This document shows, one piece after another, positions 40,166-55,475 of a stretch of DNA of 64,000 nt. A program made the position numbers and the translations under genes. A model generated the notes under the pieces. It saw only the letters and a program-made list of their open reading frames with translations. It did not search any database and was not told where the DNA came from. The stretch lies in IMG/VR virus record IMGVR_UViG_3300045971_000577, positions 186,001-250,000 of that record. One strand, written 5' to 3'. The stretch's first letter is position 1. Every line of letters begins with the position of its first letter.

Positions 40166-40287
40166 GAAGTTTTGCTCAGCAAAAAGCCGCTCTTGGAGCG
40201 GCTTTTTCATGTATGGCGTCTCTAAGAAGAATCCAACTTCTATCTTGACCTTAGGAGTGTCTTATTCTATGCATTGAACTATAGAGA

Positions 40288-40512
40288 CTATCTTTCTGCT
40301 TTTTCAAGTCTATCGTAGTAATCAGGAAACTCGTTCAAATGATCTAATGCAATTTCTTTAGCAAGGTTGAGATTACCTGTATGTTCTTGTTCAACCTTGA
40401 TACCCTTACGAAGCTGATTTGCGAGATCGTTATACGGAACTCCGTGCTTCTTTAGCACTTCCTGGAAGGAAGGGGTTTTCTTACCCATCATGTCGAATTC
40501 GTATAATCTCAT
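40288..40512 (-). CDS. DUF5661-like small protein (MRLYEF leader)
   Basis: GIKVEQEHT....AKEIALDHL.EFPDYYDRL. Confidence 0.75.
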   Translation of the reverse strand: MRLYEFDMMGKKTPSFQEVLKKHGVPYNDLANQLRKGIKVEQEHTGNLNLAKEIALDHLNEFPDYYDRLEKAER

Positions 40513-46120: not shown

Positions 46121-46212
46121 TGGTAGGAGCGTAGGGAATCGGACCCTATCGAGAACACCTATCTAGTGCTAAGAGGCTTATAAGACCTCCCTGACTGCCA
46201 AGTCTCGCTCCC
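46121..46212 (-). tRNA. Class-II-type tRNA with UAU anticodon (Ile-like)
   Basis: GGGAGCG/CGCTCCT acceptor, A73, CCA; loop CT-TAT-AA; 24-nt variable region; T-loop TCCGATT. Confidence 0.7.
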
Positions 46213-47659: not shown

Positions 47660-48487
47660 TTAGTTGATTGCACAAACTTCAGCCTTTGCAGCCTTAGCAC
47701 TCTTTGTGGCAGAGGGCCAGATCTTGTCGGCGTATTTGACGGATTTTGGCACGGGAAATACGATACCAGTCTCTTTTTGCACTTGAGCAAGGCTAGATAA
47801 GAACTTGGTCAAACTACCAGATGCAGCTTCGTGGTTAAATCTGAATACCATTGCTTCGTTTGTTTGCGTGTCGATGATAATCTTGTAGAAGCCGTTAGGC
47901 ACAGTTACCAAGTTTGCACCCATTGTCTTATCTTGCTTCTGGTTATAAATCGGCCCAGCATAGATAAGCAAGGTGTGCGAACGGTTGATTGCCCAAGCAC
48001 GAGTTTGGTCTTCGAGCTTTTTCCAAATGCCACGGTTGAATTGCGGCAGTTGTGGAGTCATGTTGCTTAGGATAAAGCTTTCTCTTGCTGCTTCTGGATT
48101 CCAGCTCATATCTGCACTGTTGGCAATGTGGCCTGTATCGTATCCGGACTTGGCATAATCCTTTAGTTCGGCACGCTTATCAGCTGGCAACGAACGGTCG
48201 GACTTGAACACAGACATTCTCTTTTCGCAGCCAGTTGCATTTTCCGGCTTCAATGTGTAAGACACCCACTGCGGAATCTTTGCCTTGTTATCGTGCTCGA
48301 GCAGATATGCTTTACGACAGATAACGGCTGTGTCATGTTTCTTGACAACAGGCTGACCATACGGAATTTGGGCAACACATTGTTCGATTGGAAGTGGCGG
48401 ATCCTGTGACTGGGCTGCTGCCGACACAGAGAATGCGAATAGAATTGAATATGCGATTTGTTTGATCATAAAAATGCCTATGTGCAA
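47660..48487 (-). CDS. Secreted DNA/RNA non-specific endonuclease (NucA/EndoG family)
   Basis: Signal peptide; GYDTGHIA, ESFILSNMTPQLPQFNRGIW. Confidence 0.9.
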   Translation of the reverse strand: MHIGIFMIKQIAYSILFAFSVSAAAQSQDPPLPIEQCVAQIPYGQPVVKKHDTAVICRKAYLLEHDNKAKIPQWVSYTLKPENATGCEKRMSVFKSDRSLPADKRAELKDYAKSGYDTGHIANSADMSWNPEAARESFILSNMTPQLPQFNRGIWKKLEDQTRAWAINRSHTLLIYAGPIYNQKQDKTMGANLVTVPNGFYKIIIDTQTNEAMVFRFNHEAASGSLTKFLSSLAQVQKETGIVFPVPKSVKYADKIWPSATKSAKAAKAEVCAIN

Positions 48488-48622: not shown

Positions 48623-49018
48623 CTAGTATAGCGGCAAACCTAATGATTTGCGACCTCTACCTTTGTTAGCTGCACCTAAAAACTCTGTCTGATAATGGCA
48701 GTTTGGGCATAGTAGTCTTAGATTTGTTGGATGATCATTACTCGAATCACCATTTGTGTGATCTACGTGCAATGTGAGTGGCTTACCTAACCATTCTGTA
48801 ACACCACATTCAGGTATTTCACATTTGTATCCACGAACTTCAGCAATATAAGTTCTTGCTGTAGGACGATCTATTCGTGTGAGCTTTCCAGCCCAAAAAT
48901 CTTCTCGATGTTGTTTAGCTTTCGATTGTGAAGCACATTTCACACTACAATACTTGTTGTTACTTTGATAACTCCATTTACATTCTTTATTACAAAATCC
49001 ACAGGTATATGTTTTCAT
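48623..49018 (-). CDS. HNH endonuclease (Zn-ribbon type)
   Basis: KYCSVKC; LHVDHTNGD..N...NLRLLCPNCH. Confidence 0.88.
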   Translation of the reverse strand: MKTYTCGFCNKECKWSYQSNNKYCSVKCASQSKAKQHREDFWAGKLTRIDRPTARTYIAEVRGYKCEIPECGVTEWLGKPLTLHVDHTNGDSSNDHPTNLRLLCPNCHYQTEFLGAANKGRGRKSLGLPLY

Positions 49019-49105: not shown

Positions 49106-50527
49106 TTAGAAGTCGTACTTTTGAACCATGACGGTTTCAAGCATGATGCTGATTGGAGTCATTTCCTTACCACCCAGCACGCTCTTCACAATGCTTGGCG
49201 AGAAGCCAGATACCAACGCAGCACCGACCTTGTTGTAGGTCACAGGGCTGTTTCCGGCGCGACCGTTCAAGTTCCAGAACACAACTTGCGGGACCTTGTA
49301 GCCAGCCGCAGCGTATTCCTTCTCAATGAACTCCATCGCAGAAACGCTAACCGCAGCGCCACCGCCATAACGGCCACCAGTTGTGCCTGCTGTTACACAA
49401 GCATCAAACTCCATGTCCGAAAGGATAAGCACCTTGGTAGGCATTTCCTTCTGATCAACCTTACCCTTCACGGCCGCACCAAGAATCAGCTTGAATACTG
49501 CTGCAAGGTCGGTGTTCATTGCCCAATCCGAACGGTTCATCGCGTCGTAACGCTGACCCAAGTCACCTGTCAACTTAACCATCGATGGCGAGCCACTGAA
49601 GGTTACAAAGGTGTCCTTGAATACACCGCCCATACGCTCGGAAACGTACAAACCCAACGACACTGCAACATCCAGAGCAGTTACGCTACCAGACACTTCA
49701 GAACTCATCGAACCCGATACGTCAACGACCGGCATGATGTTCTCGTCCGAACCTTCCAAGTAGTTAGGCAGAGCCTTCCACTGTTCGATCGAAACGGTAC
49801 GATCACCGGACTTCAACGAACGGATAACGTCGTATGGGTACGACACGCTCGCGTTGATCTTGGTTTCACCAGCCACCAGTGCAGCCTTGTAAGCACCGTA
49901 TCCCGAAGGATCGTGCTTCAAGAATGCCTTCTGGTAACGACCAGCAGCAACCGAAGGAACGTGAGGGTATGTGATACCTGTCCACTCCTGCGCACACATC
50001 TTCTGCTCGACAGTGTTGGACAAGCCAACTACGAGCTTACGATATTCCTTGGGAGTTAGACGCAAGTAGGAGCGAATCTTGTTCGCTTCCGCGCCCTGAC
50101 GAGGCATCCACTTTGCGCACAAACCGTCCTTCACGTCGTTCAACGCAAAAGCGATCATACGCAGAGCTTCACGCTCCAATGTGGTACCAAAAGTCAGCAA
50201 AACGTCGTCCCAGCGACCCAGTTCCGGAACCTTCACCAACAGGCGCGAAGCCAATACGGGTTCAGTCTTCAGAACATAGGAGAACAACTTACGGAATGTT
50301 TCACGCTCACCAGCACCACCACGTGCATCACGTGCCCACTGAAGGACGCGGATTGCGACTTCGCTGTCTTCTGCCAAGGCAGCAGCGAAAGTAGAAGTGA
50401 TGTCCTTACCACGGCTTGCGCCAGCAAGGAAGAAGAGGTCCACGTTCTTGTTCAACGAGGATGCGTTTGTAACTGCGCCGTTAGTTGTGGTTGCGCTCGA
50501 GTTTACTGCTTCAAATAGTGTTGTCAT
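49106..50527 (-). CDS. DUF2828-type TROVE-like + vWA protein (Ro60-like)
   Basis: TTNGA, WARD.RGGAGER, GRWDD, AKWMPR; vWA MIDAS VVDVSGSM; VLILSDMEFD, VVFWNL, VSGFSP; start MTTLF at 50527. Confidence 0.85.
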   Translation of the reverse strand: MTTLFEAVNSSATTTNGAVTNASSLNKNVDLFFLAGASRGKDITSTFAAALAEDSEVAIRVLQWARDARGGAGERETFRKLFSYVLKTEPVLASRLLVKVPELGRWDDVLLTFGTTLEREALRMIAFALNDVKDGLCAKWMPRQGAEANKIRSYLRLTPKEYRKLVVGLSNTVEQKMCAQEWTGITYPHVPSVAAGRYQKAFLKHDPSGYGAYKAALVAGETKINASVSYPYDVIRSLKSGDRTVSIEQWKALPNYLEGSDENIMPVVDVSGSMSSEVSGSVTALDVAVSLGLYVSERMGGVFKDTFVTFSGSPSMVKLTGDLGQRYDAMNRSDWAMNTDLAAVFKLILGAAVKGKVDQKEMPTKVLILSDMEFDACVTAGTTGGRYGGGAAVSVSAMEFIEKEYAAAGYKVPQVVFWNLNGRAGNSPVTYNKVGAALVSGFSPSIVKSVLGGKEMTPISIMLETVMVQKYDF

Positions 50528-50544
50528 AGTGTTTTCCTTTATCA

Positions 50545-50656
50545 GAATCATTTTTTATACTGTTGCCTATACCAATTCGGCTACCTTGCTGTTACCAACA
50601 AGGGTGGGACTCGAACCCACAACTCACAGTTGCTTAGTTAATTGCGGAACTGATTC
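50545..50656 (-). ncRNA. Y-RNA-like unit A (YrlA-like circularly permuted tRNA domain)
   Basis: GAATCA/TGATTC closing stem + CCGCAA; T-arm GTGGG-TTCGAGT-CCCAC; loop-closed 7-bp acceptor; then D-arm. Confidence 0.75.
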
Positions 50657-50670
50657 ATTAGAATGAAATC

Positions 50671-50779
50671 AAGATTATTGTTTTACGTTGACCTGTGTGC
50701 TGCCGTTACACTAAGCTACTCCGGAGTCGAACCGGTCCCCTGGTTTGGATTGTAAGTTTTTGGTTGCTGTAATAATCTT
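50671..50779 (-). ncRNA. Y-RNA-like unit B (permuted tRNA-like, reduced acceptor)
   Basis: AAGATTATT/AATAATCTT stem + ACAGCAA; CCGG-TTCGACT-CCGG T-arm precedes the GTG..CAC D-arm. Confidence 0.7.
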
Positions 50780-50793
50780 TTAGAAATAAATCA

Positions 50794-50899
50794 GATTCGG
50801 CGTGGCGAGTTTTTGCTTTCCCCTCCAGAAAGGTTCTTAGTTAATACCCTTTCGGGTGGTTGCTAATATGCTATATTTTAGTTGTTGCTGAAACGAATC
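50794..50899 (-). ncRNA. Y-RNA-like unit C (no tRNA domain)
   Basis: GATTCG/CGAATC stem + TTTCAGCAA; internal ACCC-GAAA-GGGT hairpin. Confidence 0.6.
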
Positions 50900-50928
50900 G
50901 TTAGTAATGTTGTTGCAAGTCTCGTAGT

Positions 50929-51312
50929 TTACAAGTTCTTTAGCGACATGTCAATGACTTCGGTTGTAAAGTGCGAAGTAGGACTACCTACACCCGGATC
51001 AACTAAAATATCGACACCGATCATAATATTTTTACTGTCTTCGTCCGATTGGAGATCAAACATTAGATAATATCCACCCGTGCCAGTAAATGAAAGCCAT
51101 GCATCTGGCATTCTGACTTTTGTATTACGTTCCTTAATGATGGTGTTTGCATTTGCACATGCATATCGTACCATATCGGTATGAATCAAATACAATACAT
51201 CATGCACCGATATCGGTGCAGACGGCCATTTCCTGACTGCCGGGTTATTATCCCAAATATAGGAGGCTGCTGCATGAAGTGATACAAGATTGTAGCAGAG
51301 TTCAATTTTCAT
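50929..51312 (-). CDS. Hypothetical protein within the RNA array
   Basis: Start MKIELC at 51312. Confidence 0.6.
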   Translation of the reverse strand: MKIELCYNLVSLHAAASYIWDNNPAVRKWPSAPISVHDVLYLIHTDMVRYACANANTIIKERNTKVRMPDAWLSFTGTGGYYLMFDLQSDEDSKNIMIGVDILVDPGVGSPTSHFTTEVIDMSLKNL

Positions 51313-51335
51313 TATGATGTGGTTTAGATAAGACA

Positions 51336-51556
51336 GCGTGGTGTAAGGGACCTGTAGAGTCAATATCTTACCGTAGCTCGATATGTTATATACATGCTAT
51401 CGGGCCTTACCCCGAGATCGAACCTTTTACATCGTCCGAGGATGTTTGTTAGTTCTTATACAGGGTTCATTGCCTAATCATACAAAAAGGCTCCGCCTGT
51501 GTCGAGTGCTAACTACAATACCGCCTTGCAGCGATGATTATTTGCTGTATCCACGC
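51336..51556 (-). ncRNA. Y-RNA-like unit D (~220 nt)
   Basis: GCGTGG/CCACGC stem + ATACAGCAA; internal ACATC/GATGT hairpin and GGTTCGA. Confidence 0.55.
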
Positions 51557-51578
51557 CTTAAAATATACTACAAGCTGT

Positions 51579-51607
51579 ATTATGCAGTAGTTCTATTTAC
51601 CTGTCAA
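51579..51607 (-). promoter_or_regulatory. Sigma70-type promoter heading the Y-RNA/Ro60-like operon
   Basis: TTGACA-17-CATAAT about 22 nt upstream of unit D. Confidence 0.7.
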
Positions 51608-51624: not shown

Positions 51625-52416
51625 TTATAGGTCAGAATTAGTAGATTTTTGGTAGGCAAGCTCTTTATTGATAAAATCAACTGCTCTTTTCATCAATCGC
51701 TTATAATCTCGTGAACGTTCTTTTTCCGGAAAGAGGTCAGATATCTTATGAAGAGCCAGTGCTCTCCTCAATGTAGTCATTGCATGTGTTTGCATCGAAT
51801 CAGCAGGCATATCTTTCATCGCAGCCCTCTCAATTGCAAGTGTAACCGAATGAAGGACTTGGGCGAACCGTGCGTTGATTTCTGCAGGTTCGGCACGATA
51901 CGCTAAATTACCCATATACGGATCATCTATGCGGTGTTGTTTCTTTCTCGGAGTTCTGTATGTGTCCGAACTACTTGCCTTTCCACTGGATTTCAAATCA
52001 TCCAGTGCGTGCCTAAGCTCGTGTACGATGGTCGATTTGATTGTGTTCGATGTTATAAAATCTGCATTTAGATAAATTGCCGGAACAGTATTATCCCATA
52101 ATCCGAGTGTATGTCTAATATTCTCTGGATCATCGTCGACATAGTTCTTTCCTGCCTGTTCGGCTGCTGCCTTTCTCGACGCCTTGATTTTTGCACGCAA
52201 GGCATCGCCCTGCAGCAGGACTATGGAAATATCTTCTATTCCCTCAAGCGGCGTGGTGCAGAAGTCGTCTATCTTACCCACGTCTAATGGTTCGGCGTTA
52301 TCTGGATCGATATAATCAGCATACTTCTGTATGTGCTTATAAACGGCGGAAGACAGGGAAATAATCGCCCTGTCTTCTTCTGTAGTTTCGATAATGAATA
52401 GTTCTAGTAGCTTCAT
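51625..52416 (-). CDS. HExxH metallopeptidase-like late protein (MKLLELF leader)
   Basis: IVHELRHALD; AEINARFAQ; GATAAATA at 52435-52442. Confidence 0.65.
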   Translation of the reverse strand: MKLLELFIIETTEEDRAIISLSSAVYKHIQKYADYIDPDNAEPLDVGKIDDFCTTPLEGIEDISIVLLQGDALRAKIKASRKAAAEQAGKNYVDDDPENIRHTLGLWDNTVPAIYLNADFITSNTIKSTIVHELRHALDDLKSSGKASSSDTYRTPRKKQHRIDDPYMGNLAYRAEPAEINARFAQVLHSVTLAIERAAMKDMPADSMQTHAMTTLRRALALHKISDLFPEKERSRDYKRLMKRAVDFINKELAYQKSTNSDL

Positions 52417-55193: not shown

Positions 55194-55223
55194 AGTATAA
55201 AAGACGACACCGCCCTGTGTCAA
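55194..55223 (-). promoter_or_regulatory. Sigma70-type promoter overlapped by an inverted repeat
   Basis: TTGACA-18-TATACT; GACACCGCC...GGCGGTGTC flanks the -35 box. Confidence 0.65.
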
Positions 55224-55475
55224 GGCGGTGTCGGTTTAAGCAGGATGATCGTAAATGGTTATTTTATTGTCTGGTCGATATACTGAATTTACCCCGACCA
55301 TATCACTAATCGCTAGTGCTCGATTCTACTCTTGTGTCTGCTGTAGACCGCGTATCGGCTTCTGCCGTATATCTATTCCGTCGGTGTGCGATATTTCTAC
55401 CGCATGTGCCTTACGAGCCACCTTCTATAGCTTTGAGCGTATTATTGGATTGCTGTAATCATCCTAAAAATGTAT

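Follow-up and report, generated by a model that had tools for sequence, protein, structure and literature searches.

The window analysed here comprises the 64,000 nucleotides from position 186,001 to 250,000 of the IMG/VR record IMGVR_UViG_3300045971_000577, a 369-kb contig of a jumbo phage. On its minus strand it carries an operon in which four structured non-coding units (D, C, B and A) precede the gene for a protein resembling Ro60, the protein that binds the terminal stem of Y RNAs. A sequence-only reading of this region had proposed a candidate Ro/Y-RNA system, consisting of a promoter (TTGACA-17-CATAAT at 51607-51579, scoring 11/12 in the promoter scan), the units D (51556-51336), C (50899-50794), B (50779-50671) and A (50656-50545), a 127-aa open reading frame (ORF), and a Shine-Dalgarno sequence, an ATG at 50527, the protein gene and a terminator, and all of these features were found in place. 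The two ends of each unit can pair as described (GCGTGG/CCACGC in D, GATTCG/CGAATC in C, AAGATTATT/AATAATCTT in B and GAATCA/TGATTC in A), and in all four units the hexamer C(A/C)GCAA follows 1-3 nt past the 5' strand. With the boundaries used in this study, the operon reads as follows:

51607-51579, minus strand: promoter-like sequence P1, TTGACA-17-CATAAT, upstream of unit D; 11/12 in the promoter scan, a consensus match only
51557-51335, minus strand: unit D, a structured RNA of about 223 nt; closing stem GGCGUGG/CCACGCU, linker AUA, CAGCAA at 51547-51542
51312-50929, minus strand: 127-aa ORF, between units D and C
50954-50926, minus strand: promoter-like sequence P2, TTGACA-17-TAAACT, just before unit C; 10/12 in the scan
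50899-50792, minus strand: unit C; closing stem GAUUCG/CGAAUC, linker UUU, CAGCAA at 50890-50885
50779-50670, minus strand: unit B; 9-bp closing stem AAGATTATT/AATAATCTT, linker A, CAGCAA at 50769-50764
50656-50543, minus strand: unit A; closing stem GAAUCA/UGAUUC, linker GUU, CCGCAA at 50647-50642
50527-49106, minus strand: Ro60-like protein gene, 473 aa; DUF2828 and DUF7788/vWA, with a Shine-Dalgarno sequence ahead of the ATG at 50527
49092-49069, minus strand: intrinsic-terminator-like hairpin, 3' of the Ro60-like gene

With P2 lying ahead of unit C, the operon is probably transcribed as two overlapping units and not as one, and in related loci the C-type units are likewise preceded by TTGACA...TAAACT-like sequences. 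In the proposal that several RNAs of differing cargo would be made from one transcript, the single transcript is therefore probably to be replaced by two, from P1 and P2. The 3' end of unit A lies 16 nt ahead of the ATG and directly abuts the Shine-Dalgarno site. The 127-aa ORF gave no Pfam, PHROG or NCBIfam match, and is probably a real gene since it is conserved in five other loci, with 33-49% identity between the counterparts.

The Ro60-like protein

Pfam searches with the window protein gave matches to DUF2828 (4e-24) and DUF7788 (2e-49) and a weak match to VWA_2, and in PHROGs it matched phrog_850, annotated as 'RNA-binding protein', over its full length, while NCBIfam contained no match to it. 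The family is large, with 6,076 clusters at 50% identity (E <= 0.001) and 710 phage records, and some databases already name its members 'Ro-like RNA binding protein'; in the literature searched, the term DUF2828 was found only in plant and tardigrade gene lists. The residues of the MIDAS (metal ion-dependent adhesion site), D269-x-S271-x-S273 (DxSxS), are invariant in all three family alignments. The Pfam TROVE domain (PF05731) was not matched by the window protein or by any of 77 family members at E <= 1, and vWA_Ro60 was matched weakly by 13 of these 77.

A single-sequence search of the PDB returned only designed armadillo-repeat proteins, which were considered spurious, and an AlphaFold2 model made without an alignment was unusable, with a predicted local distance difference test (pLDDT) score of 39. 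When hidden Markov model profiles were searched against PDB sequences, Ro60 came at or near the top, with E-values (0.017-0.3) which were marginal, and therefore the family profile was compared with the Ro60 of Thermus phage phiLo, the structure of which has been solved. The two were aligned by hhalign with a probability of 91.6% and E = 8e-7 over 397 collinear columns (residues 11-441), at an identity of approximately 18-22%. An AlphaFold2 model based on a 113-sequence alignment had a pLDDT of 91.8 and a predicted template modelling (pTM) score of 0.90, and in a Foldseek search its only PDB matches at E <= 0.001 were six Ro60/TROVE entries, matched at full length, which included those of phiLo (9KOP and 9L5Y), Xenopus (1YVR) and human (9NF8 and 9NFA). 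The E-value for 9KOP was 2e-8, and template modelling (TM) scores were between 0.42 and 0.61 (0.61 for 1YVR and 9NF8) over 517-574 alignment columns; the next matches were bare vWA domains at E >= 0.013. Based on the hhalign comparison with phiLo Ro60 and the AlphaFold2/Foldseek analysis, the window protein can be placed in the Ro60 fold family, in agreement with its earlier description as a Ro60/TROVE-like protein with a vWA domain. As modelled, it is a divergent member of this family, with an alpha-helical (HEAT-like) TROVE-like ring and a vWA domain with intact MIDAS.

The RNA handle and its link to the protein gene

The units were compared with a viral sample of 80 loci encoding relatives of the Ro60-like protein (referred to by handles such as L032), of which 68 are non-redundant and together cover 459 kb. 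The shared element, hereafter called the handle, is a 6-9-bp helix formed by the two ends of the RNA, followed by a 3-nt linker and a single-stranded C(A/C)GCAA. In its strict form (the strict module) it consists of AG-N5, a 3-nt linker NUA or NUU, C(A/C)GCAA, the cargo, and N5'-CU-G. The flanks are also conserved, with (UU)AA 5' of the stem and G plus an AU-rich (U/A) sequence 3' of it, and an A-rich stretch precedes the 3' stem strand, opposite C(A/C)GCAA. The window stems are slightly degenerate copies of this consensus, in which the outermost pair is G-U or a mismatch, and unit B has one extra pair.

Within the 68 viral loci there were 103 strict modules on the gene strand versus none on the opposite strand, and only 0-2 were found in composition-preserving shuffles and 0-2 with control hexamers. 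In a test which does not presuppose pairing, for 106 of 138 5' half-motifs a perfect complement of the N5, with CUG, was found no more than 330 nt further on, whereas swapping of the N5 sequences among sites gave a mean of 9.9 and a maximum of 21 paired sites in 200 trials. The stems also covary, as the 41 distinct stems contain three to six base-pair types at every one of the five variable positions. The conservation of stem plus hexamer next to homologues of the protein, which was expected from the sequence-only reading, is borne out by these 103 modules and 41 covarying stems. A relaxed module finder without the AG/CU-G constraint gave a background of 42-83 hits with control hexamers, and was dropped as evidence. 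The CAGCAA handle has no family in Rfam 15 and is not described in the literature searched. From these analyses it is clear that the RNA motif family is real, widespread and sharply defined, and that it is tied to the divergent Ro60 branch.

This tie was found in both directions. Starting from the protein, a strict module is present within 3 kb on the gene strand in 46 of the 68 viral loci, and several of the others have near-matches. Starting from the RNA, a 14-base half-pattern (TTAAAG-N6-TACAGCAA) was used to scan the viral collection, and 82 matches were analysed; 16 of these have a proper 3' partner, and a homologue gene was present nearby for 8/16, versus 1/66 for the unpaired (chance) matches. 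Similarly, in 80 loci from bacterial genome assemblies there were 36 strict modules on the gene strand versus three on the reverse strand. Blastn searches against sequenced phages did not identify a close relative of the window, and gave only weak matches inside the gene.

Examples were found in phages of very different hosts. In the Escherichia coli phage wV8 (Felixounavirus), the tRNA cluster that closely follows gp047 contains four perfect modules in gaps without annotation (L083 4755-5529), and T-arm, acceptor-like hairpin and D-arm are all present in one of these. Three modules were found in Listeria phage LP-048, in an unannotated gap directly upstream of LP048_059 (L084 2621-2884), and mycobacteriophage MsGreen has three modules just downstream of a gene annotated as 'Ro-like RNA binding protein', with GGAC...GUCC-AG stems and a middle unit which is YrlA-like (39 bits). 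Both wV8 gp047 and LP-048_059 are full-length homologues of the window protein. The hosts of handle-bearing phages span the Proteobacteria, Firmicutes and Actinobacteria, and the handle is kept across protein homologues which are only 30-50% identical.

With regard to the position of the modules, 17 strict modules end 11-26 nt ahead of the ATG, and mostly the Shine-Dalgarno sequence begins 1-8 nt past the stem; no strict module was found inside the coding region. Three loci (L012, L014 and L021) have nothing other than a minimal module between the promoter and the gene. The L029-L059 group (approximately 50% protein identity) has no module upstream, and a minimal form of 53-60 nt, AGGAAGG...CCUUCCU-G, is found 150-300 nt past the stop codon.

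Cargos, the permuted form and the genomic neighbourhood

A fifth unit (E) is present in the window several kilobases from the operon, and was included in the comparison of the cargos. The features in and around its region are:

55466-55241, minus strand: unit E, 226 nt, in a non-coding gap; canonical module AGGAUGA-UUA-CAGCAA...UCAUCCU-G, CAGCAA at 55455-55450
55233-55205, minus strand: strong terminator-like hairpin, 13 bp plus U tract, directly 3' of unit E
55188-54736, minus strand: orf150, downstream of unit E
54734-53646, minus strand: RNA ligase gene, downstream of orf150; Pfam RNA_ligase (PF09414) and PHA02142 OB domain, phrog_968
51625-52416, minus strand: orf263, 263 aa, directly upstream of the operon

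The handle alone is common to all five units, and their interiors differ. The core of unit A (50628-50561) is a YrlA-like permuted tRNA mimic, and matches the Rfam YrlA model with 27.8 bits (E = 0.0016; gathering score 69). The likeness to Y RNAs that had been suspected was thus recovered in unit A, through its T-arm, acceptor-like hairpin and D-arm, and covariation of the T-arm and of the acceptor-like hairpin was seen in the A-type alignment (A7, 13 related units). Unit B contains a T-arm (50735-50721) and a D-arm (50713-50696), together a tRNA elbow, without the acceptor-like hairpin, and B-type units are also present in L004, L006, L007, L008 and L020. The best score with the Rfam tRNA model (RF00005) was 17.7 bits, across D-arm/T-arm pieces of units B and A and compared to a threshold of 29 bits, and ARAGORN did not predict a tRNA gene in 50545-51556.

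Unit C has one variable and one conserved hairpin (CCUUUCUGGAGGGGAAAG), and the loop of the latter (GGAG) forms a pseudoknot with CGCC upstream of the closing strand. The hairpin of the C-type class (CCUUUCYGGAGGGGAAAG) is nearly invariant, and of the cells in the C-type alignment (A6, 16 sequences) 93% pair, while both sides have changed in 12 of the pairs; such values were reached in 0/500 shuffles, and the pseudoknot contains G-C to A-U swaps. RNAalifold placed the GC of CAGCAA in a pairing with CUCGCC in the C-type units, which was rejected because the loop pseudoknot covaries far better. The D-type units are 210-270 nt in length, occur in at least 14 related loci and have a conserved 3' core with two covarying hairpins; their closing stem covaries in the D-type alignment (A4, 11 sequences). 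In unit D, a hairpin loop (GUAAGG) is complementary to CCUUAC just 5' of the closing strand, and the sequences suggest a D-type pseudoknot GUAAGG/CCUUAC, as this pairing is present in 10 or 11 of the 11 sequences at four of six positions and in 9/11 at the other two, with a U-G wobble in L005 and L006 at one of these two positions. No Rfam match was found for unit D. Unit E has a conserved and syntenic counterpart in another jumbo phage (L082 5624-5813), upstream of the RNA ligase; its stem covaries, and its cargo is a pseudoknotted fold, as in unit C and, as the sequences suggest, unit D. The YrlA model did not match units B, C, D or E, and apart from YrlA and the sub-threshold tRNA match, the rest of Rfam 15 (ROOL, GOLLD, tmRNA etc., E <= 10) gave only PYLIS_3 and mir-363, both at chance level.

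The related loci contain further types of cargo. Some modules are bare hairpins of 32-66 nt, part of which abut the ribosome-binding site of the gene, and the tRNA-like cores of other relatives score 33.7-41.9 bits with the YrlA model. In L032 there are up to seven tandem units with different cargos, and one module encloses a nearly complete tRNA-like body in natural order. A minimal unit in L032 (2442-2505) and L048 has as its sole cargo the hairpin AUUUGA-CUUUUAA-UCAAAC, similar to the anticodon arm of tRNA-Lys(UUU), which is classically attacked by anticodon nucleases; CUUGUAA loops are found in units of L078 and L080.

In Clostridia-class assembly loci the handle was found in a permuted form, in which a capped 7-bp hairpin followed by N3 and CAGCAA is located inside tRNA-like scaffolds with their own acceptor ends. 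This form was counted 104 times on the gene strand, 17 times on the reverse strand and 5-11 times with control hexamers. What is conserved is the end of the helix together with CAGCAA, irrespective of where the RNA termini fall, and the location of the permuted form far from the RNA ends argues that the handle is a recognition site and not a mere processing stalk. In L257 (2196-2843), L245, L244, L233, L268 and L235, from Clostridia, Lachnospiraceae and Treponema assemblies, there are tRNA-like RNAs whose acceptor ends are normal and which have a 50-70-nt insertion containing the capped handle; some keep anticodon-like loops (CUGUUAA, CUUUAAA), and ARAGORN called none of them as tRNA.

The neighbourhood of the Ro-like gene is rich in functions related to RNA repair and tRNA. 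In 13 related loci and in L082 the Ro-like gene has an RNA ligase gene no more than 3 kb upstream of it, and an RtcB ligase gene is located 1.3 kb downstream of the LP-048 homologue. In mycobacteriophage LeBron, an RNA ligase and a polynucleotide kinase are encoded near the Ro-like gene, the product of which (gp53) is moderately toxic when overexpressed in M. smegmatis (PMC13148394). The orf263 product has no Pfam or PHROG match, and related loci keep orf263 directly upstream in 22 cases (34-59% identity); it may be a component of the system. Like the window-type RNA ligase, orf263 is restricted to the clade of the window.

The window contains at least 14 tRNA genes. An unusually long tRNA-Ile(tat) of 92 nt was predicted by ARAGORN (46121-46212, minus strand) and not reported by the Rfam tRNA model at its gathering score, and a tRNA at 40217-40288 (minus strand) was found by Rfam and missed by ARAGORN. 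Downstream of the Ro-like gene and close to it, tRNA genes are interspersed with a gene for a DNA/RNA non-specific endonuclease (Endonuclease_NS, 1.5e-45; 47660-48487, minus strand) and with two paralogous genes for HNH endonucleases (48623-49018, minus strand, and L001 6013-6393). After unit E (55194-55233, minus strand) a terminator and a promoter-like site overlap: TTGACA-18-TATACT, which would serve orf150 and the RNA ligase gene, is located in the loop and descending arm of the terminator hairpin. In LP-048, a sequence approximately 1 kb upstream of the Ro-like gene (L084 1427-1978) matches ROOL with 90 bits, compared to a gathering score of 99.1. In the related phage CKA15, the small ORFs published as the most highly transcribed, CKA15_059-061, are probably a ROOL-like RNA which was not recognised as such (PMC12282133).

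Comparison with known systems and interpretation

YrlA RNAs are encoded next to Ro60 genes in bacteria and phages, mimic tRNAs and contain the Ro-binding motif GNCGAA(N0-1)G (PMC4201824), the Rfam YrlA (RF02553) consensus being acggCgaAUGC. As in YrlA/Rsr loci, the RNAs described here adjoin a Ro60-fold gene, there are several different RNAs per locus, pairing of the ends produces a terminal stem, where a conserved motif lies on the 5' strand or follows it and the 3' strand is preceded by an A-rich stretch, and RtcB or another RNA ligase is encoded nearby; a permuted tRNA interior is found in unit A and partly in unit B, but not in units C, D and E. In contrast to YrlA, where GNCGAA(N0-1)G is located within the stem, the units carry NUA-C(A/C)GCAA after the stem, and a GNCGAA(N0-1)G/CGAA motif near the 5' end is absent from the window units. 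The units also differ in their YrlA scores (28-42 bits versus the gathering score of 69), which come from the tRNA-like core alone, in the many cargos that are not tRNA-like (C-, D- and E-type pseudoknots and minimal hairpins), and in their protein partner, which belongs to Pfam DUF2828/DUF7788 and not to TROVE. By the Rfam gathering criterion the units are not YrlA, no unit reaching that score, and with NUA-CAGCAA in place of GNCGAA/CGAA this agrees with the distinct class that had been envisaged.

The Ro60 of phage phiLo binds two upstream Y-like RNAs (Yrl1 and Yrl2) and the host PNPase (PMC12135203). It is likewise a phage Ro60-fold protein with Y-like RNA genes directly upstream, and is the best structural and profile match of the window protein (PDB 9KOP, 9L5Y). 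However, the phiLo RNAs use CGAA in a bulge, and the region upstream of the phiLo Ro60 gene contains CGAA and no CAGCAA or CCGCAA. Metazoan Y RNAs are bound to Ro by their terminal stem, and other proteins are recruited by a variable loop or module. The units have the same modular design of a stem for Ro plus a variable module, and differ from metazoan Y RNAs in that the latter have a bulged helix with GGUCCGA and no tRNA-like domain, and are transcribed from single genes by RNA polymerase III.

Ro60 similarity was previously described for Bas63 gp130 (Felixounavirus), deletion of the gene for which (gene 130) results in sensitivity to the Ppl defence (bioRxiv 10.1101/2024.10.10.617714), and for CKA15_055, which is present in purified virions (20 peptides, 57% coverage; PMC12282133). 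In both papers nearby Y RNAs were guessed, and the RNA partners were left unidentified. Both proteins probably belong to the family of the window protein, judged from the genus (shared with wV8) and gene position for Bas63 gp130, and from the relatedness of CKA15 to LP-048 for CKA15_055. The view of the sequence-only reading that the family has no assigned RNA ligand is to be qualified, since a functional lead exists and databases call members 'Ro-like RNA-binding protein'. While the Ro/Y-RNA concept itself is already known, the NUA-CAGCAA handle, the non-tRNA cargos and the permuted form in a tRNA scaffold are not present in Rfam 15 or the literature searched.

We consider it probable that a phage ribonucleoprotein system of the Ro/Y-RNA type, with a divergent Ro60 homologue at its centre, is encoded by the locus, and the recurrence of the handle next to this family in phages of very different bacteria makes it look like an undescribed branch of the Ro/Y-RNA system. 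By analogy with Ro60, which binds the Y RNA terminal stem and a motif on its 5' strand, the Ro-like protein is likely to bind the handle directly. Each RNA would then act as an adaptor or decoy which brings a different cargo to the protein; the candidates are enzymes of tRNA binding or RNA repair (among them the RNA ligase encoded nearby), exonucleases of the host, and host defence nucleases which cleave tRNA. The units would be made from one or two polycistronic transcripts (from P1 and P2) which are split in the AU-rich spacers of approximately 14 nt, and as the last handle ends just before the Shine-Dalgarno site, the Ro-like protein would probably repress its own translation when free of RNA partners.

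Several observations weigh against this reading. The single-sequence folding z-scores of the window units are weak (-0.3 to -2.6), and the folding of each unit that was advocated earlier contributed little on this level, although the comparative stems were decisive. Conservation of UUAA ahead of the stem, and of G plus AU-rich sequence behind it, would suit a nuclease processing signal as well. In 22 of the 68 viral loci there is no strict module within 3 kb, several of these having near-matches, and a homologue was not found in the DNA around 8 of the 16 paired modules, three of these stretches being only 1.2-2.3 kb long. RNA-seq data of CKA15 were considered as expression evidence for the units and rejected, because the highly transcribed region is probably the ROOL-like RNA. 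Finally, as the handle lacks GNCGAA/CGAA, the binding mode is not transferable from known structures.

An alternative which we regard as unlikely is that the units are processing or stability cassettes, in which flanks and hexamer signal to a ribonuclease of host or phage, or protect the ends, so that single small RNAs and tRNA-like RNAs are cut out of polycistronic transcripts and stabilised, and where the Ro-like gene is a mere neighbour in the tRNA/RNA-repair island and its product does not bind the handle. This would explain the conserved UUAA before and G plus U/A after the stem, as well as the conserved AU-rich spacers of approximately 14 nt between units (UGAUUUAUUUCUAA, GAUUUCAUUCUAAU), the modules of wV8 among genuine tRNA genes and the L032 module around a nearly complete tRNA-like sequence. 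However, an end-stem does not need a single-stranded hexamer at a fixed 3 nt from the helix, the permuted capped hairpin sits inside tRNA-like scaffolds far from the RNA ends, cargo-free minimal modules form the 5' untranslated region of the gene, and the link with the gene spans phages of Proteobacteria, Firmicutes and Actinobacteria, whose RNases differ.

It is also rather improbable that the handle is bound by another factor, be it a host RNA chaperone or ribosomal protein, the orf263 product or the RNA ligase, with the Ro-like protein acting on the cargo or on other RNAs. The conservation of orf263 directly upstream in 22 loci and of an RNA ligase in 13 would suit such a binder, but these genes are confined to one clade and the handle follows the Ro-like gene everywhere examined. 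Similarly, CAGCAA and the A/C-rich sequence behind it are reminiscent of the A-R-N repeats which Hfq prefers in Gram-negative bacteria, whereas the handle is also present in mycobacteriophages, Listeria phages and Clostridia-class loci; mycobacteria are not known to have Hfq. An action of the Ro-like protein on other RNAs would be in line with the binding of misfolded RNAs by Ro60 through its central hole (PMC4201824).

That the modules are purely a cis-acting 5' leader of the Ro-like mRNA (an attenuator, or a riboswitch-like or T-box-like element) is very improbable. The last module does abut the Shine-Dalgarno sequence in 17 loci and in the window, and L012, L014 and L021 have only a minimal module between promoter and gene, but such a leader accounts neither for up to seven tandem units with different cargos (L032), nor for units downstream of the gene in MsGreen, the L029-L059 group and wV8, for unit E at a distance of kilobases with its own terminator, or for tRNA-like cargos as found in trans-acting Y RNAs. 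Decaying tRNA pseudogenes, or a functionless repeat spread by the homing endonucleases of the tRNA island, are hardly credible despite the tRNA-rich region with HNH endonuclease genes and the tRNA fragments among the cargos, as compensatory changes keep stems, pseudoknot and T-arm, the modules are strand-specific (103 vs 0) and the handle is conserved across 30-50% identical homologues.

The Ro/Y-RNA-type reading can be extended, tentatively and at somewhat less than even confidence, to the whole DUF2828 branch, with helix-NUA-CAGCAA as its RNA ligand signature and one protein ring that would use interchangeable cargos, as adaptors or decoys, against RNA/tRNA-targeting host defences and shut off its own synthesis by way of the 5' untranslated handle. 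This extension would span Felixounavirus, P100-like Listeria phages, KVP40-like Vibrio phages and mycobacteriophages (710 records, approximately 6,000 clusters at 50% identity), and the cargos would be permuted mimics of tRNA, mimics of the anticodon arm, pseudoknots, and tRNA scaffolds that are otherwise normal but contain a handle.

The Ro60/Y RNA pair is a classic and poorly understood case of RNA surveillance which has been barely explored in phages, and with the handle a large and widespread protein family (DUF2828 / 'RNA-binding protein') gains a concrete candidate RNA ligand. With its length of approximately 20 nt and its sharp definition, the handle allows candidate partner RNAs to be found by pattern searches of genomes, and the presence of unannotated units in well-studied phages (Felix O1/Bas63 relatives, P100-like Listeria phages) makes genetics and biochemistry feasible. 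The varied cargos and the permuted form constitute a natural experiment on Y-type RNAs as adaptors or decoys, and are relevant to the question of how the tRNA pool is protected or exploited by phages. If the signature does hold for the whole branch, the plant DUF2828 proteins would also become candidates for having unrecognised RNA partners.

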